The notes under the pieces: generated by a model | What the model saw: the letters and a program-made list of their open reading frames with translations, nothing else | Told to the model about the DNA's origin: nothing | The model's database searches: none | From: Zygnema circumcarinatum SAG 698-1b | Taxonomy: Eukaryota > Plantae > Zygnematophyceae | Reading direction: 5' to 3' | Length of the DNA stretch: 64,000 bases | Assembly (NCBI GenBank): GCA_037447605.1 | Contig: CM074822.1 | Span: forward strand, 19,292 to 83,291 | Position numbers and translations under genes: made by a program | In this document: positions 5,305-60,031 of the stretch, piece after piece | How the letters are laid out: each line of letters opens with the position of its first letter | Position numbering within the stretch: the first letter of the stretch is position 1

Positions 5305-7410
5305 ACTCTCCCACTATAGGTTGCGAGAGTGAGCAGTCTGATTATATACTCCCGAGGTGTCCGGTAAGAGAACATTAAGCTTGTCGCCACACGTAATGAG
5401 TAAGGCGCCCGGTCACGATCCAGCCATGGCAGCGGATCCATAGCGTGGATCTTCCCAACAAATAGAATATTTGGTCGGCATGAGATTCGTCTCCACCGCC
5501 ACTCTGCAATCCGTGCTCTTGTGGCCTCGCTTCTTGCATTTGAAGCAGATTCCCTTGAATCCCTTCTTGACGGATGACGATGCTCCTCCACCCCGATCTT
5601 GGGTGTTCTTGTTCTTGTAACAGTCGGCCGAGAAGTGGCCCGTCTTGCCGCACGTGTAACACGCTCCCGCAGGGCGTTCCCCACGGTCTGCTCTCGGCGC
5701 ACCTCCTCTTCGAACTTGTCGTGAGTGCAGCGCCAACACCTTCTCCTCGGTGCCTCCAACGTCTTGGACAGTGTTCTCCTCCTTGATCCTTCGTTTCACT
5801 TGCTCAAGGGTCATCACGGTGTTTGTTAGAACAGTCCTAAGAGCTGCAACTGCTACATCGAATCGGCCAGGCAGTCCCCCTAGAAACTGGCTGATTTTAT
5901 GGTCTCCCTCTAACGGTTTTTGCAGCGCTATGAATCTCTCCATTAGAGTATCAAATCTGACCATATATTCACTCAGCTTCTCTTTCGAGGACATCTTCAT
6001 TTTCCCAAGCTGCGTGTAAAGGCTGACTATCGTTACGTTATCCTTTACATCATACATCTCCTCTAAGCATCTCCACATAGCATGTGAAGTCTTAAGGTCA
6101 TACAGCATGGATGAGGGACTTCCCCTCACGCTCATGATGATCTGGGTGAGGGCCTTGTTGTCCTTGGTCCTCCATCTGGCGAGCGCTGTGTCGAACTCCG
6201 ACTGCTGCTCCGCCGTGGCTCCCTCCGGCTGCACCGGTGCCTTGATGGTGCCGTCAACGTACCCCAACAGCCCCTTGCCCACAAGCAAAGGAACCAGCCG
6301 CCATCTCCACCCCTTGTAGTCCGAACCATCGAACGCTGGGATGCTGAACTTCACGTGGTCCTCCTCGCCACCTTGGGCTCTGATACCACTTGTTGAAGCA
6401 GGGGTCTGCTCCCCACTTCCGGCGCCACCTCGGGTGTCGCCCTCCATTGGAACTTGAGTTCCCACGGATGAAGACATTCAAACACTCAAAGCTCTATCTT
6501 ACTTCACTCATCGCCCATAACAACAGAATGAAGCTACAAGACAAGCACAGCGGAAATCACAATGAGAGAGTGTTAGGAGAAAGCTCACGGCTCTAAAACT
6601 CCTTATAATAAAACTGTCTTCCCACAATGAAGTTCTCCCACCACTTCAAGGTCCCTCTTACTCACTACCTCACGACACAAGTGTAGGCAGCCTAGCAGCA
6701 CGAGCAGGTTCTGAGTAAGACCCGAGACTATGACAGAGTAGTGTAGGTGGGTTGCTTCCCATAATAAAACTACGCACTATATAATATGGCGTCCGTGACG
6801 TGACACACATGTCACGTCCCGTCCGCCATTGCAAACCCATGCACCGAGTCTGAGTGGGCGCACTCAGAAATAGCGACTAGCTAGCTGCCTCGTAAACCTA
6901 CGGCGGCGCCGACCTAGTTCTTGTCGGATCGTACATCCGTCCGTACAGTTTCGCCGTTTCGCCAGCGCTCCTTCGCAGTCTTCGCCCGCCGACATCTCGG
7001 CCGTACACTCGAACTCGCGGACCCACATCGCGAGTGGTCCACGTGGCGCATTCCGGTTCGCCGCCAAATATCTTCCATGTCGTTTCCGCGCCGCAACTTT
7101 GCGCTCCGCGTTTTGCGCCCGCGTCGCGACCAATCAGAGTCGCTCGCGTCCGTACTTCGCGAATCCGCGGCCGCGCCTCGACCAATCAAAGTTGCGCGTT
7201 CGTACTCCACTTACTTGTGTCACCGCCGCGACCAATCAGCGCCGCTCGTTCGTACTCCGCGCACTCGCGGCGCACTCACCAAAGTCAGAGCACCGACATT
7301 ACTAAATCTACGAGCACTACGCCTAGCAGATCTCATGTTCTACAAACTGAGTACCACAACAAGTTAGTGTGTGCCATATAATGTCTAACTATCATACACT
7401 AACACTAACA
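5305..7410 (-). mobile_element. 5' part of the host copia element: 5' LTR (6391-7410), PBS, gag and start of protease
   Basis: The LTR has TG...CA ends (TGTTAGTG...TTCAACA on the minus strand) and a PBS at 6377-6388. An intact gag ORF at 5413-6477 has two zinc knuckles and is near-identical to the nested copy's gag. Confidence 0.9.
5413..6477 (-). CDS. Copia Gag polyprotein (354 aa ORF)
   Basis: FSIPAFDGSDYKGWRWRL N-terminal motif, EKLSEYMVRF...FLGGLPGRFD capsid region and two CX2CX4HX4C knuckles. Confidence 0.85.
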   Translation of the reverse strand: MSSSVGTQVPMEGDTRGGAGSGEQTPASTSGIRAQGGEEDHVKFSIPAFDGSDYKGWRWRLVPLLVGKGLLGYVDGTIKAPVQPEGATAEQQSEFDTALARWRTKDNKALTQIIMSVRGSPSSMLYDLKTSHAMWRCLEEMYDVKDNVTIVSLYTQLGKMKMSSKEKLSEYMVRFDTLMERFIALQKPLEGDHKISQFLGGLPGRFDVAVAALRTVLTNTVMTLEQVKRRIKEENTVQDVGGTEEKVLALHSRQVRRGGAPRADRGERPAGACYTCGKTGHFSADCYKNKNTQDRGGGASSSVKKGFKGICFKCKKRGHKSTDCRVAVETNLMPTKYSICWEDPRYGSAAMAGS

Positions 7411-8964: not shown

Positions 8965-11900
8965 TCAAGGACCGCCAAGGCTCCCTAGATGTTTCTTTAA
9001 AGCTCGATCTTTCCGTCTATGGTTGGCGACAGATGCTTTTTGTTGCTCCTTCCGAGCAAATGACCTTGATTCTCCCGCCTGCGCCATTGCAGGTCCCCTT
9101 CCACCTCCAACGCCACCCCTGCCACGGCCGCCCCTCCATCCCGCTTCTGCAACTCCTGCCTCCCCTGGGCCTCCCTCGTCGTCATCGTCCTCATCACTGC
9201 TCTCCACGTTTGCCAGCAAGTGTGCTCGGTTGCCGCCTCTTCCTAAGCCAAATATAGTTTCTGCTTCCACCTTCTTCAGAGCCTCTGCTTCCTCTGCCGA
9301 ACCAACAGCGACAGATCCCGCTACTCGGTAACTATAGTTCTTTCCATCTTTCAGATAGAACTGTGGGCCTGCAGACTTATCTAAGCTTTGCCCCTGTCTT
9401 GGCCCTCCCCGACCAGTCACAACCGGGTACTTTATGCCAGCAGCACCGGCTTGCCCTCCTCTCCCCTCCGCCCTCTCTGTATTGAGACCTTTTCCCAACG
9501 ACCGTGTCTCTGCACCTCCTCTCCCACCACGTCCTTCAGTTGGACCCACCGTTCCACTTGCCCGTCTGACAAAGGACCCACCTCCACTTTGCGCTGCAGG
9601 GGTTGCCCTGAGACTCTCAGAAACATTCCTCTCGCCCTCCAATGCACCGCTCGTGCCACGTCTCATCTGTGCGTCCAGCACATTCTCCAACTCCTCTTCT
9701 CCGCCACCAGCACCAAATGTGTCAAGATCATCGAACGAGTCATCGTACTCATCCTCGTATTCTATTTCCGCATCTTTCGCATATCTGCGAATCTTCGCAG
9801 CATCTTCACTTGCTCGCCAGTCCACCAACTTCTCGTCCCCCTTGTGTTTCCTTACGAATCTTCCTTCCGGCAATCCTAAGCCCGCCGCTTCCGCAGTAAC
9901 AGAGCTGCTACCTCCTGCTGCAGATCTTGCCTCGTCTAGGCGCACACCACCACCGTCTGTGACTTGCCGTCTGCCAACGCTCCTTTCGGAGGCCATACTT
10001 TCCATCACTTTGGCTTTCCCTTTGTCAGTCGCAGCAACTGTCTGCTTCTTGGGCAACTCAGCGGAGTGGACATCCAACGAAGCCAAATCCTCATGTAGGG
10101 TGCCTTCCAAGATGTGCTCGATCACTGCCTCTGCACTGCCGTCATACACTTCAAGGCAGGCAGCAAGAAAGCCATCACCAAAGTCTGGCAAGAGGTCCTT
10201 GATCTGACTGATCTTCGACTGTTGGATGGCCATCAAGCTCGCGTCCTCGCAAGCTGCCGGGCTCACACTTCGACCGGAAGAGATCGGGACTCTGCGAGAG
10301 GGAGAGGGAGAGGGAGAGAGAGGGGGAGAGGGAGAGGGCCCTGCGAGGGAGCGGACGTGCTCGAACTGAGCGCCGTCCAACGAAATTGCGCCTGCAAGGG
10401 AGGCCCCTCCCTACCATGGCAGTGAGTGCGATAGAACATGGCCAGCAGAGAGGGAGAAAGCAGCGGAACTGCACGTCAAACAGACACGGATCTGCGACCT
10501 GACATGCTTATCAAGAGAGACCTGCACGGTTTACGAAGGACATAAGCCCATTGAAAAATTGAGAATTAATTAACTGACTTAACTAAGAAGGTCTAAAAAG
10601 TTGGCCAAAGAAAGCACCTAATCTCTCACATTTTCAGGCATGAAAACGAACCCCTAAGGTTACAGTTAGGATGTCCAAAGAGTTCCGCAATAGAAATCCA
10701 GAACACAACGTATCGCTTGCAAGCGAATGCAACTTTCGGACCGGAAGGAAGGCATGGCACTGGAGAAACATGCATGCAGCGATGTTATTGGCAGCATAGC
10801 ATAGCCATCTTCCCAACCCCATTAACTGCATTTAAATAGCTTGCCTGTGGTCCTCAAGAATAAACCAGAATGTGCATAATGTAAAGAACTGCGACTGTTG
10901 CTCATTTAATCCTCCACTGTCAATACGTCAAACAGGTGCGTAGGTGAGTCAAAGGCTATAACGTTTTCAAAGTTGCTTTCTCGCCCATCCACTAGCATTT
11001 AGAGCCACGTGCAAAGCTTGCTGCAGACACTGCATCAAGTCGTCTGTCTCGTTCAGTAGGTCTACTTCGGGCATCGCCCCAAATCCTACTGCAGCCTTTT
11101 GTGATTGACTATAAACTGGCTTCCATATTCAAAGAGAATTAGATAAAATTTCTAATATTTGAGAACTTAGATATTCAATCATCCAACCCTCCTGAAAGTC
11201 AGAAAACTGCCCATCAGAATCAGACAGCACACCTCATTGCAACTCACCTTTCTCCATGGCAGTCCGGACCGACGTGACGAGTGCGTATCTGCGTTCGACT
11301 GCCCTCAAAAGACTCCCTCTTCTTTCAAATCCCCCGCCTCCCTCCCCACTCTCCTCTGACCCCACGGAGAGGGTCACGAGTGCGTGCAGCAACGCCTCCC
11401 CCCTCTCCGCCGACCTCTCCGCCACCCTCCCCTCCCCCTCCCCCTCCCTCTCCTCCTCGCCGGCTTGTAGGCAGCCATGGCGGAGAAGCAGCCACAGCAG
11501 CTCTGTCAGAGCTCGGCGTACAGGGACCAAGGGCCACAGCGCCGCCATGGATGGAGGGGTCTCCTCGGAGGGGGAGTCAGCGGTAAGGGTCTGCCGAAGA
11601 GTTGGCAGAAGGGAGTCATAAACCTTCGCTAGGGTAGGGAGAAAAGAAGCCCCGGTGGTGTCTGCCTCGCTGAAACCAAAGTTTCATCCCCCCCCCAATA
11701 AACCCACCAGTCGCTGAGGAATACTCAAGATCAAAGAACATGGGTCTTACTCGGTGGGGTTCTGGTTTGTCAAGTTTCGTGTTAGACGCTCGTCGCGGAC
11801 AAAATGTGTAACATCATGTACGAAATGGTCATTGAGTTTTACAATTATGCAAGCTTCTCCGTATTCTGCAAGCACATTCTACCCTCCTCAACTTAACATA

Positions 11901-31976: not shown

Positions 31977-34900
31977 TCAATGTCTGCTATGTCTCAACAA
32001 TGTGATCTCCTCCCCGTCCCCGTCCCCGTCCCCGTCCCCGTCCCCGTCCCCGTCCCCGTCCCCGTCCCCGTCCTCCCCTCCGTCGGCTCCGAGCCCTCCC
32101 CCGCGGCTGCCGCCGTCACGGGGCGGCTGCCGCCTCCAGAGGGCGGCCGTGGGGGAGCCGGGGACCGACCCGACCTCGCTCCCGGTCCCCGTCCCGGTCC
32201 CGGTCCCCGTCCTGGTCCCCGTCCCGGTCCCCGGCGGCCAGGGCCAGGGACCGGCCTCCTCCGCGATGGAGCTGGCGGCGGGCGAAGAGGAGGAGGAGGG
32301 GTCCTCCGCCAGCTCCATGGCTTTGCTCGAGTCGTCCACCCAGTTCTGTATTCTTGCGCGTTCCCTATCGGCGGGGTATGTCCAGTACATGCCGGTTATC
32401 AAAGTCACGCAGACTAGAAAGGGGACGGCTATTGTCAAGTACAGTCCCTTTGCAAGGGAGTACGCATCGTCCAAATCTTTAGGGCTTGGCTGCCCTGCTG
32501 CATCACTCCCTTCAGCGTCTGCAGACTGCGAGAATCCGTAGAGCTTTACTGCCAGGAAGCCCACAAGAGGGGAGCCTACTGCTGCCACCGACTTCTCCAG
32601 CGCCATGTCGAAGGCATAAATGGCGGTCCGAAGGCGGGCCGGCACTATCTGTCCCACCCAGCATGCACACAAAGGGGCAAAGTAGGTCCTCGGCACTGAG
32701 AAATTCCATCGACAGAACGAAGAAATGAAAGCACACGAGGAACAGAAAGCTGCTGCGCTCAGCCACTCCGAAAGAAACAACTACCCACCAGATTCAGCTA
32801 CACCACTATCACAGTCACTCCAACTAAAAACTCATTCACGACTTCGTTCATTGCAGGAATGCCCTTGGTCTCACCTCAGCAAAGATGGGCCAATTGCAGG
32901 CTGGCGAATTCCAGGAAATGAGAAAGCCCATAACGAAGAAAACGGCCGCGAAAGCGGCAGGCCAACGGCCGCCATAGGGCAGCCCGAGGAGCAGCACCGC
33001 CGAGAGGGGAATGGCCGAACCCGCGCTCACTTGCGCGCAGAGAATGCGACCCACATTGGGATGGCGGAGAGCCGCCCAGTCGCCCAGCCACCCCCCGAAC
33101 ACGGACCCGCACATGTTGCCCACAGCAAGCAGGGCAACCTGTCACCCACCCTCTGCCAGCTATCAGCAGGCAGCAAGGCCCTCCCTCCCTCCATCCCTCA
33201 CAGGACCTTCCTTTCCCTCCATCTCTCACAGCCCTCACAGGGACCTTCCTCTCCCTCCATCCCTCACAGCCCTCACAGGGACCTTCCTCTCCCTCCATCC
33301 CTCACAGCCCTCACAGGGACCTTCCTCTCCCTCCATCCCTCACCTTCCTCTCCCTCCATCCCTCACAGCCCTCACAGGGACCTTCCTCTCCCTCCATCCC
33401 TCACAGCCCTCACAGGGACCTTCCTCTCCCTCCATCCCTCACAGCCCTCACAGGGACCTTCCTCTCCCTCCATCCCTCCACAGGGACCTTCCTCTCCCTC
33501 CATCCCTCACAGCCCTCACAGGGACCTTCCTCTCCCTCCATCCCTCACAGCCCTCACAGGGACCTTCCTCTCCCTCCATCCCTCACAGGGACCTTCCTCT
33601 CCCTCCATCCCTCACAGCCCTCACAGGGACCTTCCTCTCCCTCCATCCCTCACAGCCCTCACAGGGACCTCTCCCTCCATCCCTCACAGCCCTCACAGGG
33701 ACCTTCCTCTCCCTCCATCCCTCACAGCCCTCACAGGGACCTTCCTCTCCCTCCATCCCTCACAGCCCTCACAGGGACCTTCCTCTCCCTCCATCCCTCA
33801 CAGCCCTCACAGGGACCTTCCTCTCCCTCCATCCCTCACAGCCCTCACAGGGACCTTCCTCTCCCTCCATCCCTCACAGCCCTCACAGGGACCTTCCTCT
33901 CCCTCCATCCCTCACAGCCCTCACAGGGACCTTCCTCTCCCTCCATCACTCACAGCCCTCACAGGGACCTTCCTCTCCCTCCATCCCTCACAGCCCTTAC
34001 AGGGACCTTCCTCTCCCTCCATCCCTGACAGCCCTCACAGGGACCTTCCTCTCACACTGGTAAATCGTCGTCCGCAACACATGACCTCCGACGCAACGAC
34101 AAGAGCAAAAAACACCACCAACAATGTGCTGTTTGCTTCCCTTAAGGCCACACAGACCTTACACGCCTAAAAAACTCCTGCGTTTGCTAATGGGGGGAGA
34201 TTCCAGATACATTCCCTCCGAGCCAAAGAGTGTCACCACCCTCATCTCCGGCAGTGACTTCTGCTGAAGCGGCGCAGATAAACATACCAGCAGGGCCGCC
34301 ATTGCGTGGGAGAAGCCCGTGAGCTCGAGCCATAGCGTGAAGAAGAGCATGGCGTTCCATGGCAGCTGCCCCGCCACGCCCTGTGCGACCACCACCTGGA
34401 ATGTGCGCACACCCAGCACGTGTCTGGCGTCTTCCAGGAGCTCTCTCAGCTCCCGAACAATGGAGGAGCCCTCATCCTTGCTTCTGAGCAGGACAGGATA
34501 GATAACATGAAACACGGTTAATACAAGGCTCAATGTCAGTCTAGCCGTATTCTCAATTTGGGGGTTTTGTCATCACGTTTGTATTCGTTACGAGATGACG
34601 ATATCTCTCCTGACTTCCTGATCCCCTAAATACTGTTCAAAAACGAGTTTGAAAGGCAGGTTCAATGCCGTATGTTCTTTCATTCATGCCAAACCCGGCA
34701 AACTCCTTGCGAAGCTGATTCGCTCTGTAGGCGAGTTCCAAACGTCATGCCTGCTAATGCTAAATGACCTCACGTCCACTCTTCTGATAATCAGCCTCAA
34801 ACAAGAATGATACCCCACTCCACTTTCTGAAGCTAAGGACCACAACGCAGAAGTTTATTATGTTCATCAATCCGATCCCTTCAACGTCCCAGAGCTGCCC

Positions 34901-36312: not shown

Positions 36313-41558
<5,246 letters not shown>

Positions 41559-41909: not shown

Positions 41910-42102
41910 GGTGCCCGCCCGCCCGCCCGCCCGCCCGCCCGCCGGCCACCGGCCACCGGTCGGTCGTTCCAGTCAGCAGTCACGACAGAGCCACGTGGCG
42001 GCCAGCCCGCCCGCCCGCCCGCCGCCCGCCGCCCGCCCGCCCGCCGGCCACCGGTCGGTCGTTCCAGTCAGCAGTCACGCGAGTGCCACGTGGCGGCCAG
42101 CG
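41910..42102 (+). promoter_or_regulatory. Duplicated ~95-bp promoter module, each copy with a perfect G-box GCCACGTGGC
   Basis: (GCCC)n-GGCCACCGGTCGGTCGTTCCAGTCAGCAGTCACG...GCCACGTGGCGGCCAG occurs twice, with G-boxes at 41990-41999 and 42085-42094, upstream of the ATG at 42427. Confidence 0.7.
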
Positions 42103-42426: not shown

Positions 42427-45347
42427 ATGGCGACATCCCTCCCCCTGCTGCTGCTCGGCGCGGCCATGGCGCTCCTGCTCCGCACCCTCCCTGCGGCCGC
42501 CGTCCTTCGGGGCTCAAGTAGGATGCTTGCACAAGTGCATGCGACGTGCCCGCAAACCGCGCTCAGTCTGTGCAGCTTCTACTTCGAAGGGTACGAGGCG
42601 GCGCCCCCCGTGATCGGGCTGGACGGTGCGCCGGACCGCGCTGTGAGTCCCGCCCTGTTGGCAAAAGACGCGAGCACGGGGAAGAGCGTGCCGGTAGTGG
42701 TGGGCAGCACAGGCGAAGCGACGTCCCTGTGCGGCTCCAACATCACCTTCTCGGGGCAGTTCTACATAACGGGACAGCCGTCACGCCTTCACGTCCGCAC
42801 CTTCAACAAGGTAACTGCTGCTCACGGCCCTCTCCGCATAGAAGCCTTTCCCATGCCTGTTTGCGGAAGCCGCTGAGCTTGAATGGACCTTCGGCGGCTT
42901 GCAGGGTCCGCGGGCGGCCTTTGCGAACTTGTGCGTTGTGCTGCCACTCCGAACAGTGCGCGCGGGCGCGCTCGAGCTCCGCCCCGGAGACGCGCATCAA
43001 AAAGAGTACCCTGAGATGCGCCGCTGCGTCCTCTTCTCTACCGGCCCCTCCTCCGCCTGCACACTCCCCTCGTCCTCTCCCTCTCCCCCTCCCTCTCCCT
43101 CTCCCCCTCCCCCTCCCCCCAGGTTCAGCCTCCCCGATCGCCTGCCCTTCTCCCCCCTTGTGTTCAAGCCGTACGGCGCGTTCTTTATATTTGGTGACGG
43201 TGCGGTTGACATTGGAAACAACAACGCTATAAGCGGAAGCCCGTTCAAGGCGAATTACCTGCCATACGGCATCGACTACATGCCTGCCAACGGCCGCTTC
43301 TCGAACGGAAAGATCTCCTTCGACTACAGCGGTGCGCGAAATAATGATTGTTGATGCTCTACTGCTATCGAGATTCATTGTTAGATTTTTTAATATTGGT
43401 GTTTTTCTGCCACCGCTTCCGCACCCTTGCCTGCCTCTGCGGTTGGCCCCGTTTCACTTTTGTAGTTGCTGAGGACTAACCGTTTCTTCTTGCTCCGTGG
43501 CTTCTTGTAACAGTGGAATTCTTAGGACTCGCTCCCGTGCCCAAGTACGCAGATTTCAATGCGGCTACTTCATCGGACTTCTTTTCAGCAGGGGTCAATT
43601 TTACCTCGTTTGGGTTAGGGTTCGTGAAGGCAGGAATCAATTTTGCCTCAGCGGGGTCAGGGATACTCTCAGAGACAAACTGCATGGCGGTAAGATCGCA
43701 CACCCCTTTTTGTTCCGGTCTACTTTCAGACATGTGATAGTAAAGAGTAGAGCCCCTGACGTTTGCTTATGTTTGAATAATCGCATTTTAACGTGCAGAA
43801 CACACTTTGCCATTCACTCAGCTTCCAAGTTAGCCAGTTCCTGGCTGCGAGTTCGAACTACACTGCGGAGGTGAGTATCGATTGCATTCTCGTTTCAAAG
43901 CATGGTCAATACTTACTCTTATTTTAGAAAGTGCGTTGACATGCTCTTCGTGACTCGTTCCCGGCATGGTTTCTTTGTAAATCGAGATGTGTGGTGTCGC
44001 ACGGCATACGGAAGTCAGTGTCAGCTGAAAACTGCTGTCACCGAATGCACCGCCATGGGACGCATGGAGTGGGGGGGTGTAGGAGAGAGCGACGAGTCTG
44101 TTCGTCATCTCGTCGGGAGGAATGGACTATTCCGTATATTTGGCGAACCCGTCAGGAGTCAATGCTACGGAACTCATTGGTAGGGTGATCGGTGGACTCG
44201 CTGAGATATTGCAGGTGAGAGTAAGCATAGTCTGGCACAGGATTCAGGAAATGGCCAGTCAGATCATCAGTCTGTCAGATATTCGGGGTATTCATCGGAT
44301 GGAGGAGTGAATTTTGCTGCTCGTCACTTAGCGCACATGCCCGATCATGCTTCTATCATACTAAGGGCTGTTTTTATCTTCCAATCTGAAGATCGCAAAT
44401 CTTAATAAGCCATCTCACCAACAGTGCGAACGAGCTAAGTGAGCAGATCATGTAAAAGTAATTTAGAACTTGTGTTTCAGCCATGGAATCAAGAATCAAT
44501 CACATGCTCTCTTACGTTCTGTCTTATTCCCAGAATGTTGGCACCTCACTACCAGCCGGGTAGAGCCTCCTCGCCTCCGTGTTTAAGTTGAAAATCTTGA
44601 ACACTAAATCGCTGCTCTGTGATTAATCGGTTGAAATTTTGTTCCCCTTCGTTTGACAGACTCTGTACACCGCCGGCGCCCGCAAGTTCCTTCTCAGTGA
44701 GCTCGCTGACTTCGGTTGCACGCCTTCATTCCTCGCCTCTGTCAATGCGGCGGAGTCGACCCCTCGGTGTTCCCCCCTCGCCACTCCCCTTGTCACGGCG
44801 CACAATGCAGCCCTGACACGCCTTCTGGCCGCCCTCCAAGCACGGCTCGCAGGAGCATACTTCACACGCATCCGAACCCAACAATACATTTACAACATCA
44901 CCTCAAATCCTGGCAGCATCGGTAAGTGCCATCACTCCTGTCGCAATCCTGCATGCCCGCATAAACACCACATTATCACATCCCAAAAATCATCGAATCG
45001 TCCCATTTCACTTCCTCCATCCGGCTTTGTCCAATTCACTCCCACGAACAAGCTGCGGAGACTCCCAATCTGTCCCTTGCATCCTCCAAGTACAGCCCCT
45101 ATTCACAGCGGTGCCCTTTGCAGGCCTCTCCAATGGCTTTGAGGCGTGTTGTGGAGGCGGCCGTTTTGGCGCGGAGGTGAAGTGCCGCTATCCGGGCGCG
45201 ACGGTGTGCGTGGACCGCGAGGCCTTCGTGTGGTGGGACGGCGCGCAGGTCTCGCAGGCCGTCCACCGCGACATCTCGCTGCGGCTGCTCGCGGGGGACG
45301 AGAGCTTCGTGCAGCCCTACACCATCCCCGCCATGGCGCTCCTTTAG
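42427..45347 (+). CDS. Secreted GDSL/SGNH-fold protein with extra N-terminal Cys-containing domain and Pro-rich linker; catalytic residues substituted
   Basis: Exons resolved: 42427-42810, 42905-43331, from 43514, about 43799-43870, about 44082-44214, about 44661-44921, about 45124-45347. Plant GDSL motifs are FIFGDG.VDIGNNN, PYGIDY...GRFSNG, GINFASAGSG, SLFVISSGGMDY, LYTAGARKF...FGCTP, ACCGGG and VWWDG. Confidence 0.9.
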
Positions 45348-46892: not shown

Positions 46893-54792
<7,900 letters not shown>

Positions 54793-55178
54793 CGCCTCGC
54801 TCCGGCCCTTCCCCTTCCCTTCCCTTCCCTTCCCTTCCCTTCCCTTCCCTTCCCTTCCCTTCCCTCCCCTACTCCCCCGTCCGCAGCAGCAGCAGCAGCA
54901 GCAGCGAGAAGGGAGCGAGTGAGCAAGCGACTGTGGCCGAGGCGAAAGTGAACCCAACAACAACCGAACCGTGACCGGACCATGCATGCATGCCATGCGC
55001 CGCACAGGACCATGGCCATGGCCATGGTGATCGGAGCGATGGTGACCGGACCAATTTGCCATGCCATGCCATGCCATGCCATGGGCCGTACGGAACGCGC
55101 GTGGTGTGGCGCGGGGGCGGCGGTAGGTGTTTGGAAGCAGCGGAGCGGAGGGCGGAGCGAAGGGCGGAGCGCGCAGCC

Positions 55179-58100
55179 ATGGCGGCACGCGGACCGGCCT
55201 CCTCCGGATGCCAACTGGAGGGAGCGCCTCCTTCGTGGGGGGGCTCCCCTGGCTGGCAGAGCAGCCGCCAAGGCTTCGGAGGAGTGAGCTTGTACAACCT
55301 CGCCTGGGCGCAAGCAGCCCACGGTGCGGCAACAGAGGAAGGCGAGCTGGAGGAGGGAGAAATTAGTGAGGAGGGGGAAGTTACTGCGGAGGGAGAAAGT
55401 AGTGAGCAGGAGCAATTCCTGATTCAGAGTGAAGCGGAGAGTGCTCAGCAGACCAGCTCACGACAGAGTAATTCTAACCAAACAACTTTCCGCAATGAAA
55501 CGGCGAATTTGAAGACATTTAGGGAAAGTATTAAGGAAAGAATCAAGCTTGACGAAACAGGCAGGGGTAGGGACGAAATATTCAAGAGAAGGGATGAAAG
55601 ATACAGAGACAAGGACGATAGAAACGGGCTCAAAATTACTTGGAGGGAGGGACGCGACAGAGGGGAAGTATGGAGGCAACCTGGTCAGAAGGAGCGGTTT
55701 CCTAGGACATACGAACGCCCTCGAATAACTGAAGCTTTTCCTCGCGGGCCGAAGCGAGGAAGAGAGGCGATGCCGCGGGAACGGGACACTAGGGACGACG
55801 AGCGAGGCAGGACGCTACAGGCTGCAAAACAATTGCTGGAGAGAACAGGCGTAAAGGATGCTCAGAGGTAGGCGATATGTCCAAGTCTAATTCGAGATAT
55901 GATTACATTTCCAACTTTGCGTCCGCACTCTCTCAGTACCACTTTTATGTGTTGGAGTTTTCTCTGAAACGGAGCGTTGAGTGCAGGTCACTGGCCACAG
56001 TTTGCCGACAGATGCAACGGGCAGTCACGATGCTGGATGAACTCCTTGGCCCTTCAGACTGCCAGTCACAGCAGGACCTTCCTGGGGATGTTGCGGCAGT
56101 GAGCAGGTGCTGTTTTGGCAGTCTTCAATCTGTCTTCGCGGTGAGCCTGACGTCGACAAACGTTTAAACACTTCATGTCCCTTATTGTCCTTCGGCCTTT
56201 GTGTGCTTTATTTCAACTGCTTCTACGACTGGCTGACAAGAAACAATGTGGCTGCTGACTTGAAAGAGAAGCGAACTCTTTTGAAAGAGAGCATTTGGCT
56301 GATGGCTGGCAGGTTGCAAACACGGCCAGCGGTCGGGAGCAGGAAGGTTTTCGGGGAGGCCCTTTTGCAGAGTACGGGGCTGTTCTGTCACCTATTGAGC
56401 AAATGCTGCTGTCCTGAGAGCTTGTCTTGCCTGTCCACCGTCTAAAACTTCTTGCTATAGGTGACGATTCGTCGTATGCAGCCTTATGGATATTGTCTGG
56501 GCTAATCGTCATCGGCTCTTCACGCAGAAGCAGGTTAACGAGGTACTTCCTTTTATCTTTCAGCTCACTCGCTATGCTGCGGCAGGACTTGTACTCTGAA
56601 ATTCATCGATTGTCCAATGACATTGCTGAAACAGAGTATTTTTTAGTCTTAAAATGCATTATCACTTTGCCACGGTCAGGTTGCATCAATGCGACGAAGC
56701 TTCGAGACAAGCTGTCTTGCTGGGAGAATAAAGGTTGAGCAGCGAGAAACTGTGGAACAGAAACCGTCCAAAGCACCTGAAAACCCGGTTCGTCCTAAAG
56801 AAGAGCATATTGTTGAAAACACTCCTGAAATCAGCGTTCCTCGTCTATCCCGTGTACCTGCCGACGCAACACCTGAAGCTGCGCCTGTGAAAGTCCTTTC
56901 GGATAATGGGAGTCAAAATGGAACCTTTTTGAAACTCTTTGGTAATCTTCCTGATGCACAGCAGGCAGCTGATGCTGCGGCTATAGCTGCAGCCGCTTTA
57001 GCATTTGCACGACGATCTAATTCATCCGTTAGTGGTGGTGAGATTTGTCCACCATCAGAATCGTCAGTTTTGTTGAACTGGATGTGGTCACAGGAGTCTT
57101 TTAGCGACCAGTTGAGCGGATTTGCACAGGCACATAGTCGTGAACCGACTGTTTATGTTGGAAGACGTGAATCTCGTGAAGATCAGCAACACCACAGTTC
57201 GTTCGAGTCAGCCGAGCAAATTAAAGTCAATGTCAAACAGGCTGGTGACCTTATCCGCCAAGCAGAGAGAATGACACGTTTAAGCAGCCAGTCAGCTCGG
57301 AATTTTGAGATTAACTCCGAAGATGGGGAGTCCGTTTCAAAACATCGTCCCTTGGCAGAAAATGAGGTGCCTCCCAGAACAGAGATCTCCAGCCATACGG
57401 CGAGTGTTGATAACTATCTGAGCCTTGTAAAAGTAGGAGAGGACATTGGCATCAAAGATTGCACACTGGTAGCTCAAGTACCGTACAATCCACAAGAGGC
57501 TTCTCATGACCATCTGGAGGATGACTACCATCCAGAGCAAAGCATGTTTGTCTTGCAACGCATGCCCAGTCCAACTCCTGGGGTTGTTGAGGATGATGAA
57601 GAAGACACAGAGGAAGGTCCATCGAATGGCGAGAATAACCAATTGATAGTTGAAACAACTGGAGCTCTTGCAGTACTTGAGAGGCCAATGGCCTCCAACA
57701 TGTTGGGCATTCCATGTTTTGATTCAAGTGAGGCTTCAGGTGAAGCTGTACAGCATCGTGATCTAGGGACTGCGCCTCCCCTTCGGAACACAACTTTGGG
57801 CATTGCAAGTCGAGACCCACGAAGAAGGCAAGAGGCAGTCACAGGTGAAGGCGCTTCCTCTCTGGGAGTACTTCAGGAGAGAAAACCCTTGGACTTCGAA
57901 AACACGTGTCGAGACGGAGCTGGGAGTGGGCGACCTGATGTCAAGAGATTACGTGTAGGTGAGAGAGAATCGAGCCGGATTGGTTATTTTGAGGACTGGG
58001 CTGGGAAATCCACTCCGAGCCAATTGCAAAGTGATGCCAACTGCAATATATCATCTGTAGAAACGAATGGCTTCTGTGCTGAGGGACCGTTGGTTATTGG

Positions 58101-60031
58101 AATATCACCGAGTTATATGAAGATAGAAACAGGTTTCAATTTAGACAGCAGACAACAAAAGCAGGACATTCGTTCTGCAGAGCTGGCAGCGAGTGTGCAG
58201 TTGGCCAGTGAACAAGGGCAGACACTGCTGTCAGTGGATATGGGGCCAAATGCACATTCCACTGATGGACAAGCCGGAGGAGAGTGTATGGTAAGTTTGT
58301 TAGTCGGTTCAATTACGCCTACTCGATTCAGATTGAAATGATGCAAGTGTGACAGCAACCCTGTCTTGTGTCCCAGAAAGGTCGACTGATTGACAATAGA
58401 CAACTGTTGCTGCTACTGCAGAGGGAGGGAGCAGTGCGTACGCGTATGCGGCAGAGAGACCCACGGCGATTGTTGCTGGAAGGCTTGGAGGAGGAGAGGG
58501 CGAGAAAGGCTGTCAGCAGCATCGCGAGAAGGGAAAGCAGTCCAACTGTGGGTGGTTTTCCTGGGCAATCGCGCAGTCCATCGCTTACTTGCAGCGATGT
58601 ACAGGGTCATAATCTGAAGTCTGCGGTAATTGGGATTCCATCAGAGGTCGGATTGATTGATAACCCCCAACGTCGCAATAAGGATGAAAAAATGGTTGCA
58701 CACTCCCAATTGAGGGGTAGAATACTGGAAGATGGTGCAGGCCAGCCACAAAGGTTTTTGGATTCTGGTACCACATCACCTGCTGTGAGCTGTGCAGAAG
58801 AAGGCAAAGAAGCTAACCCTGCGTCTCAGCCACTCGAGCAGCTACTTCAGGGCATGTCACCTGCAGAACGGGCATTGGTGGCTGCTGAACGTATGAGGCG
58901 TATGCAGGAACAGGAGCGAATGCTTGACGCTAGAAAGCTCTGCCTCGTGTTAGATTTGGACCATACCTTACTCAACTCAGCAAAGGTGCTTGCTCTCACC
59001 AAATTATCGGAAGAATGCCACTTGAAAAATGCACCTCGATGTGAATTCGCGCCCGTGCACAGCTTGGATTGTTATTTTTGGTAGTTTGTCTGGAACTGGT
59101 TCACAGTGACCGAAAGACTGGGTTGGGAAATGTGCATGTTTTGCAGTTTGGGGAGATTGAAGAGTGGGAATCGCATTTAAGGGCTGCTGAACTCCAAGAA
59201 AAGAACCGAATGGCAAGAGAGGGAGGGAGACGACGTGAGCTGTACCGGTTTGCTAACATGGCCATGTGGACGAAGCTTCGACCAGGCATTTGGACCTTTC
59301 TTGAAAAAGTGATTATCTTTAGCACCCATTTTCATCCACATTTCCCCGGGTAGAGCTTCATCGATGTAGTACTTCTTTATTCGTTATTTTCCAGCTGCCT
59401 CCATGAAAACTGTTCTCTGCCATCGTCGTGTGCAGGCAAGTGCACTATTTGAGCTGCATGTATACACTATGGGCAATCGTGCATATGCTACACAAATGGC
59501 GCGCCTTCTTGATCCTTCAGGCAACCTCTTTGCTGGTCGAGTCATCTCCAAGGGCGACGATTACGGAGAAGGACCCACTGACACTGCTCTAAGACCACGC
59601 AGTAAAGATCTGGATGGGGTATTGGGAATGGAGTCCACAGTACTCATTTTGGACGACTCGGCAAGTGTTTGGCCGCACCATGCTGAAAATCTGATTGTTG
59701 TGGAACGGTGCGGCCTTTTTCTTTCCCTTACAGCTCCTTAATATCTCCTGTAGCTGCACTGCAGAACAGCAAATAACGACCTGCCTATCAGCAGCTTCAT
59801 GAGAACCATTCAAGGATTCTGATGGTCCTGCGATTCCTTCGCTGCAGCTATATGTACTTCCCTTCTAGCCGCCGTCAATTCGGACTAGCGGGGCCATCAC
59901 TGTTGGAAGTTAGCCACGACGAGCGCGAAGCAGATGGCATGCTTGCATGTGCATTTGCGGTGAGCAAGCTTCCTTGCCCATGCCTTACTCCTGTGGACGC
60001 CGGTCTGGAAACTCCCACTACCCTTGGACCA

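Follow-up and report, generated by a model that had tools for sequence, protein, structure and literature searches.

A Zygnema GDSL gene lacking the catalytic Ser, Asn and His codons: a probable modular pseudoenzyme

In land plants, GDSL proteins form one of the largest families of secreted enzymes, with roles in cutin, wall acetylation and lipids. How the family evolved in the algae related to land plants is, to our knowledge, still poorly documented. A stretch of 64,000 nucleotides (nt) from Zygnema circumcarinatum SAG 698-1b (assembly GCA_037447605.1, contig CM074822.1, positions 19,292 to 83,291 of the forward strand), referred to below as the window and numbered from its first letter, carries a seven-exon gene for a GDSL/SGNH-family protein in which three essential catalytic residues are replaced and which we read as a probable pseudoenzyme. 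An earlier note on this DNA had started the gene at 43181, a position that falls within exon 2; the coding region begins at 42427, and that description was also incomplete in overlooking an N-terminal domain, a linker and a duplication at block II. The features of the gene are listed below, with counts taken from an alignment of 110 homologues and with P0023, P0027 and P0028 denoting the three relatives that share its whole architecture.

42427 to 45347, forward strand: whole coding region, with GT-AG introns, an open frame and end-to-end alignment with P0023, P0027 and P0028
42427 to 42810, forward strand: exon 1, a signal-peptide-like start (MATSLPLLLLGAAMALLL) followed by the beginning of the six-Cys N-domain (CP..C.FYFEGY..)
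42905 to 43331, forward strand: exon 2, second part of the N-domain, Ser/Pro linker and GDSL block I (FIFGDG)
43061 to 43120, forward strand: Ser/Pro linker inside exon 2, a CCTCTC repeat; homologues have Pro-rich linkers of varying length in the equivalent place
43199 to 43201, forward strand: GGT codon for Gly227 in place of the block I nucleophile Ser (homologues: Ser in 109 of 110, one gap)
43514 to 43689, forward strand: exon 3, block II (GINFASAGSG) with the oxyanion Gly318 retained and an insertion upstream of it that is specific to this protein
43588 to 43671, forward strand: in-frame 42-nt tandem duplication (AGVNFTSFGLGFVK / AGINFASAGSGILS), copies at 43588-43629 and 43630-43671, identical at 27 of 42 nt
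43799 to 43870, forward strand: exon 4 (NTLCHSLSFQVSQFLAASSNYTAE)
44083 to 44214, forward strand: exon 5, block III (SSGGMDY)
44122 to 44124, forward strand: ATG codon for Met367 in place of the block III oxyanion-hole Asn (homologues: Asn in 109 of 110, one Asp)
44660 to 44921, forward strand: exon 6, the LYTAGARKF...GCTP...C...HN region (block IV area), with a weak PF00657 match (13.1 bits)
45124 to 45347, forward strand: exon 7, with ACCGGG, two Cys, the block V motif WWDGAQ, the C-terminus and the stop codon
45246 to 45248, forward strand: CAG codon for Gln526 in place of the block V catalytic His, with Asp523 kept (homologues: His in 110 of 110)

In three-frame translation, the coding region comprises 558 codons followed by a TAG stop (45345-45347), and an in-frame stop codon lies 8 codons 5' of the ATG with which exon 1 begins. 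All six introns are of the GT-AG type, none of the 12 splice sites is damaged and the reading frame runs unbroken across them. All six splice junctions are gapless in the alignment with the transcript-derived P0023, P0027 and P0028, and when these three proteins were compared with the window by tblastn, only the exons of the model were matched and no alternative exons with canonical motifs appeared; measured against these relatives, the exon model therefore holds. No paralogue was found inside the window. The resulting single open reading frame (ORF) encodes, in this order, a signal peptide, an N-domain with six Cys (about 140 amino acids), the Ser/Pro linker (which contains SSSPSPPPSPSPPPPPP, specified by the CCTCTC repeat at 43074-43117) and the GDSL domain. 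The protein has five N-x-S/T sequons (N-glycosylation), and no retention signal was seen in its 558 amino acids. The GC content at third codon positions (GC3) is higher than the intron GC content in every exon.

Two further observations concern the gene and its upstream flank. Its GC3 changes from 0.81 and 0.74 (exons 1-2) to 0.56-0.62 (exons 3-5) and then to 0.66 and 0.88 (exons 6-7), a course that follows the GC content of the adjacent introns (0.42-0.60). About 330 base pairs (bp) upstream of the start codon, at 41913-42101, lie two copies of a GCCC-rich 95-bp tandem repeat, which may belong to the promoter or the 5' untranslated region.

As the protein is encoded in a spliced gene, database searches (Pfam, PDB sequences, exhaustive HMMER, a word-indexed library and metagenomes) were run exon by exon. 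Single exons were too short for Pfam, where the best result was the match of exon 6 to PF00657 (13.1 bits, against a cut-off of 23.6) and exon 1 had no significant match; a PDB sequence search with exon 6 likewise returned no match. Exhaustive HMMER with exon 6 gave 26 matches at E ≤ 0.001, none above 44% identity and none of them an orthologue or copy of this protein. The word search with exon 2 recovered generic block I fragments only (54-66% identity over approximately one third of the query). No protein nearly identical to exon 2 or exon 6 was found in the libraries, from which the locus is absent in any form. The sole locus retrieved by a metagenome scan with exon 7 (L003, Ga0182024_10001964) was rejected as spurious, as it shares only LRLLAGDE and has no GDSL domain.

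Among the exon 6 matches was P0023 (538 amino acids), which shares the full architecture, and a search with P0023 retrieved two more proteins built in the same way, P0027 (576 amino acids) and P0028 (523 amino acids, a Trinity transcript from EukProt). The other matches of that search were ordinary land-plant GDSL proteins aligned over the C-terminal 60% only, and a word search limited to the N-domain of P0023 found P0023 and P0027 only. Both of these correspond to intron-free Logan RNA contigs (L001 and L002, respectively) of run SRR8128906; a further match, P0008, is from Closterium sp., in keeping with a streptophyte-alga origin. End to end, the Zygnema protein is 42% identical to P0023, 43% to P0027 and 37% to P0028. 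What they have in common includes the N-domain motifs FYFEGY, RTFN and STGPS and the position of the linker, and all 14 Cys of the Zygnema protein are aligned with Cys of P0023 and P0027, 12 of them being common to P0028. The three relatives differ in having the catalytic Ser, Asn and His and in missing a 14-residue insertion that precedes block II here. They probably come from other species: their GC3 is 0.43-0.52, compared with 0.73 here, and at the DNA level P0023 and P0027 gave one match only (66 nt, 74%). This small family has so far been seen only in streptophyte-alga-like transcriptomes, and its other sampled members look catalytically competent from their sequences.

Membership of the GDSL/SGNH family follows from homology, as blocks I to V occur in order, the alignment is full-length and 44 of the 54 columns conserved in at least 85% of homologues are kept; in a tree, the protein is nested among GDSL proteins that have precomputed PF00657 hits. 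The GDSL domain was aligned with the 110 homologues using MAFFT. Across the five signature columns the Zygnema protein reads GGMDQ, compared with SGNDH in 101 of the 110 homologues and close variants in the remainder, and no homologue has a substituted residue at the Ser or the His column. The residues expected of an active SGNH hydrolase in block I (Ser), block III (Asn) and block V (His) are thus missing and the block II Gly318 is present, that is, essential catalytic residues have been lost within an otherwise conserved fold. The three codons reported by the earlier note (FGDG with GGT at 43199-43201, GGMD with ATG at 44122-44124 and DGAQ with CAG at 45246-45248) were read directly and do fall in the columns of the block I Ser, the block III Asn and the block V His. 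Its statement that the surroundings are preserved was likewise borne out by GCTP (residues 416-419), ACCGGG (492-497), all 14 Cys, the frame and the six introns. To derive the three codons from AGY, AAY and CAY (giving GGT, ATG and CAG, respectively) takes four or more nucleotide changes; one wrong base call would thus be insufficient, and sequencing error is as unlikely as that note had argued.

In an SGNH lipase, replacing Ser, Asn or His by Ala abolishes activity in each case, and replacing the Gly does not (PMC10779480). With all three essential residues gone and only the dispensable Gly kept, canonical catalysis is lost in the Zygnema protein, and the mechanism, in agreement with the earlier reading, is unusable in its canonical form.

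The gene has also acquired a change of another kind. The tandem duplication in exon 3 inserts 14 residues immediately ahead of the block II strand and repeats the start of block II; nowhere else in the gene do neighbouring 42-mers agree at 27 or more of 42 positions, and the insertion is absent from all homologues in the alignment. In an AlphaFold2 model of P0027, the equivalent site is a loop between a helix (323-326) and a strand (329-331), which places the inserted loop, in this modelled relative, beside the oxyanion hole. The GDSL domain of that model has a predicted local distance difference test (pLDDT) score above 90, and the N-domain, for which only four sequences were available, a score below 50.

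Whether the losses reflect decay or maintenance was judged from the pattern of conservation. Among the 29 columns conserved in at least 97% of homologues, the Zygnema protein keeps 26, and the three lost are exactly Ser, Asn and His (catalytic columns lost 3 of 3, other near-invariant columns 0 of 26); were three losses to fall at random among the 29 columns, this outcome would have a chance of 1/C(29,3), i.e., 1/3654. The assertion of the earlier note that substitutions are confined to catalytic positions stands for the near-invariant columns and fails for the protein overall, in which ~57% of positions differ from the nearest relatives. In the tree, the protein is sister to P0023 and P0027 (support 84/64), with a terminal branch of 1.03 vs. 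0.65-0.84 for the corresponding paths to these two, and separate four-taxon trees gave a branch excess of ~1.5-1.9 times in the N-domain and in the GDSL domain alike. In dN/dS comparisons (nonsynonymous and synonymous divergence) with L001 and L002, dS was saturated or undefined and dN alone was usable; the ratio of GDSL-domain to N-domain dN is 1.2-1.5 for pairs that include the Zygnema protein and 1.46 for the active pair, a similarity which argues that there was no relaxation specific to the GDSL domain. As the near-invariant losses are only catalytic, the 14 Cys are kept and the branch excess is modest and equal in both domains, the protein is likely, judged from its sequence, to have been maintained without catalysis rather than to be decaying.

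The best-surviving alternative, which we nevertheless regard as improbable, is a young unprocessed pseudogene, i.e., an unused duplicate that is drifting and has not yet suffered a stop, a frameshift or the loss of a splice site. The terminal branch, longer than those of the active relatives, would fit this, as would the failure of the library searches to return a transcript-derived protein of the gene, and the in-frame duplication near block II could be damage. Drift, however, would not be expected to single out the catalytic residues among near-invariant columns and to leave 14 of 14 Cys and 12 of 12 splice sites intact, and the N-domain, a part without any role in catalysis, shows an equal excess in rate. 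The two 42-mers have diverged by 36% (64% identity) and the frame is still open. An estimate for neutral decay can be made from the coding sequence, in which 3.1% of possible substitutions create a stop: if neutral, a minimum of 3-4 substitutions among the 9 catalytic-codon positions implies a lower 95% bound of ~0.09-0.15 substitutions per site, and at 0.1-0.15 neutral substitutions per site the probability of no stop is 0.0055-0.0004, with indels and the 12 splice sites not yet counted. Jointly, at least 4 substitutions in three chosen codons and no stop in 1674 nt have a chance of ~1e-5 under neutrality. Had the catalytic changes instead arisen while the gene was in use, this would mean that it encoded a functional pseudoenzyme at that time. 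The loss pattern, the intact reading frame, splice sites and Cys, the modest and equal rise in rate and this calculation together argue against plain neutral decay, as the earlier note had held.

Less probable still is that the protein remains an enzyme and uses the SGNH scaffold for non-canonical chemistry, in which another nucleophile or base would support, for instance, a lyase- or transferase-type reaction. The motifs of the groove are retained (GD, GNNN, GRFSNG, NFASxG, the D after block III and the D of DxxH), and the GDSL active site has been described as flexible and multifunctional (PMC4757993, PMC8490726). Against this, the local sequence FGDGAVD offers no Ser, Thr or Cys as a nucleophile beside Gly227, the His nearest to Gln526 lies six residues C-terminal to it on the next helix, one replacement suffices to kill the SGNH lipase (PMC10779480) where three residues are gone here, and no precedent emerged from the literature searched. 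Finally, an artefact, whether from misread or misassembled bases or from an exon model that misses canonical exons, is scarcely credible, as it would take four or more independent base changes in three exons ~2 kb apart, tblastn with three homologues matches only the modelled exons and every junction is gapless against transcript-derived proteins.

At the level of sequence, then, the pseudoenzyme reading is well supported. We put at about two in three the probability that this is an intact gene for a 558-amino-acid secreted modular GDSL protein which is catalytically dead by the SGNH route and has most likely been selected as a pseudoenzyme; retention by selection is suggested because the fold-defining residues and the disulfide Cys are kept. 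Several points weigh against it. The searched libraries returned no transcript-derived protein of the gene and no orthologue with identical changes, although the absence of a transcript tells little because the locus is missing from the word-searched library in any form. With respect to the nearest relatives dS is saturated, the comparisons of rate are built on 3-4 sequences and a moderately supported node, and a branch longer than those of the active relatives would equally be produced by a phase of relaxed constraint. The ligand-binding role considered below is purely inferred.

If selected as a pseudoenzyme, the protein could work as follows. The signal peptide would lead to secretion of a modular protein made of a disulfide-rich N-domain of ~140 amino acids, an extensin-like stalk rich in Ser and Pro, and a GDSL/SGNH domain of the plant type, and a secreted, glycosylated, wall-associated location is plausible because of the signal peptide, the five sequons, the Ser/Pro stalk and the lack of a retention signal. 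With Gly in place of the acyl-accepting Ser, Met in place of the oxyanion-hole Asn and Gln in place of the general-base His, neither ester hydrolysis nor transfer would proceed by the SGNH mechanism, and a 14-residue duplicated loop has been gained beside block II. The fold probably persists, given the other fold-defining residues and the disulfide Cys, and would still present the former substrate groove. The protein may then be tethered in the extracellular matrix through its N-domain and glycosylated stalk and act there as a non-hydrolysing binder, spacer or competitor for an esterified wall polymer or surface lipid that is processed by active paralogues. Such a role is our best guess. A fuller version, in which the triple catalytic loss and the duplicated loop mark an old, selected, wall-tethered pseudo-esterase that serves as a reader, protector, competitor or regulator of active paralogues, is offered as a tentative possibility.

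In a Foldseek comparison, the best structural matches of the GDSL-domain model of P0027 were ChoE (6uqv), PlaA (8a25), AnAE (9l1r) and a CE16 acetyl xylan esterase (7ztn), with E values of 1e-11 to 1e-14 and target-normalised template modelling (TM) scores of 0.65-0.81, and the alignment of blocks III and V reaches N147 and D285/H288 of ChoE. These are active single-domain enzymes of bacteria and fungi with ~20% identity, and they were compared via P0027 rather than via the Zygnema protein itself. According to the titles of their crystal entries, the ChoE mutants S38A, N147A and H288N hold acetylthiocholine, which, as far as such titles go, suggests that substrate binding survives replacements of this kind.

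A non-catalytic plant GDSL protein, for which the earlier note had named precedents, is documented in MVP1/ERMO3/GOLD36 (At1g54030), which has conserved motifs, a single block I Ser-to-Gly change and no lipase activity (PMC4757993, PMC3498303). MVP1 resembles the Zygnema protein in being a plant-type GDSL with Gly at the nucleophile position and well-conserved other blocks; it enters the secretory pathway, and its non-catalytic cellular role is independent of restoring the Ser (PMC4757993). It has one catalytic change, whereas in the Zygnema protein the Asn and the His are gone as well, and MVP1 lacks an N-terminal Cys domain and a Pro-rich stalk. Its clade is that of Brassicaceae proteins associated with endoplasmic reticulum bodies and myrosinase, whereas the Zygnema protein clusters with algal N-domain GDSL proteins in a tree from which MVP1 was left out; the catalytic losses in the two were probably independent. 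In an Arabidopsis survey, 3 of 116 GDSL members were dead, and five sequences with one or two catalytic mutations were recorded in other plants (PMC4757993). The Zygnema protein is another member of this known kind of GDSL pseudoenzyme, as MVP1/ERMO3 of Arabidopsis has the same Ser-to-Gly change. No description of an algal GDSL pseudoenzyme was apparent in the literature searched, an absence limited to that library.

The retention of a dead copy in an alga-specific, wall-tethered subfamily would, if true, represent catalytic loss and reuse outside land plants, and would provide a natural substrate-trap variant for identifying the ligands of active paralogues. Should the protein prove to be an old, selected pseudo-esterase, no GDSL pseudoenzyme would have been described outside land plants before it, and dead GDSLs would have been recruited independently of MVP1 in Brassicaceae. 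As a concept this is not new, in view of the Arabidopsis Ser-to-Gly pseudoenzyme and the surveyed sequences with one or two mutations, and the gain would be incremental unless function is demonstrated.

Elsewhere in the window, several other features were recorded. A perfect (GA)n microsatellite of ~340 units (680 bp) at 40221-40898 accounts for the pronounced skew in both GC and AT seen in the 40-42 kb bin. On the forward strand, an ATG-initiated ORF of 481 codons (32725-34170) consists almost entirely of Pro/Ser-rich tandem repeats of ~30 amino acids (PSSPSIPHSPHRDLPLPPSLTALTGTFLSLH); it sits in the most GC-rich, C-skewed bin of the window, has no Pfam match and could be either a repetitive wall-type protein or a satellite that is open by chance. 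On the reverse strand, an ORF at 5413-6477 contains a copia-type gag domain (PF14223, 1.9e-24) and a CCHC zinc knuckle, and a long ORF at 8965-10380 contains a CUE ubiquitin-binding domain (PF02845, 9.5e-10) and a Gly/Arg-rich tail. In the region 48196-55329, also on the reverse strand, a WD-repeat-like ORF (48196-48960) and an N-terminal PH domain of the FAN type (54313-55329; PF25400, 2.1e-27) probably represent exons of a single large FAN/BEACH-type gene. Two successive long ORFs on the forward strand at 56689-59084, the second of which has at its end LDLDHTLLNS, with the DxDxT motif known from FCP1/CTD-phosphatase-like proteins, probably form one gene with a long disordered N-terminal exon.

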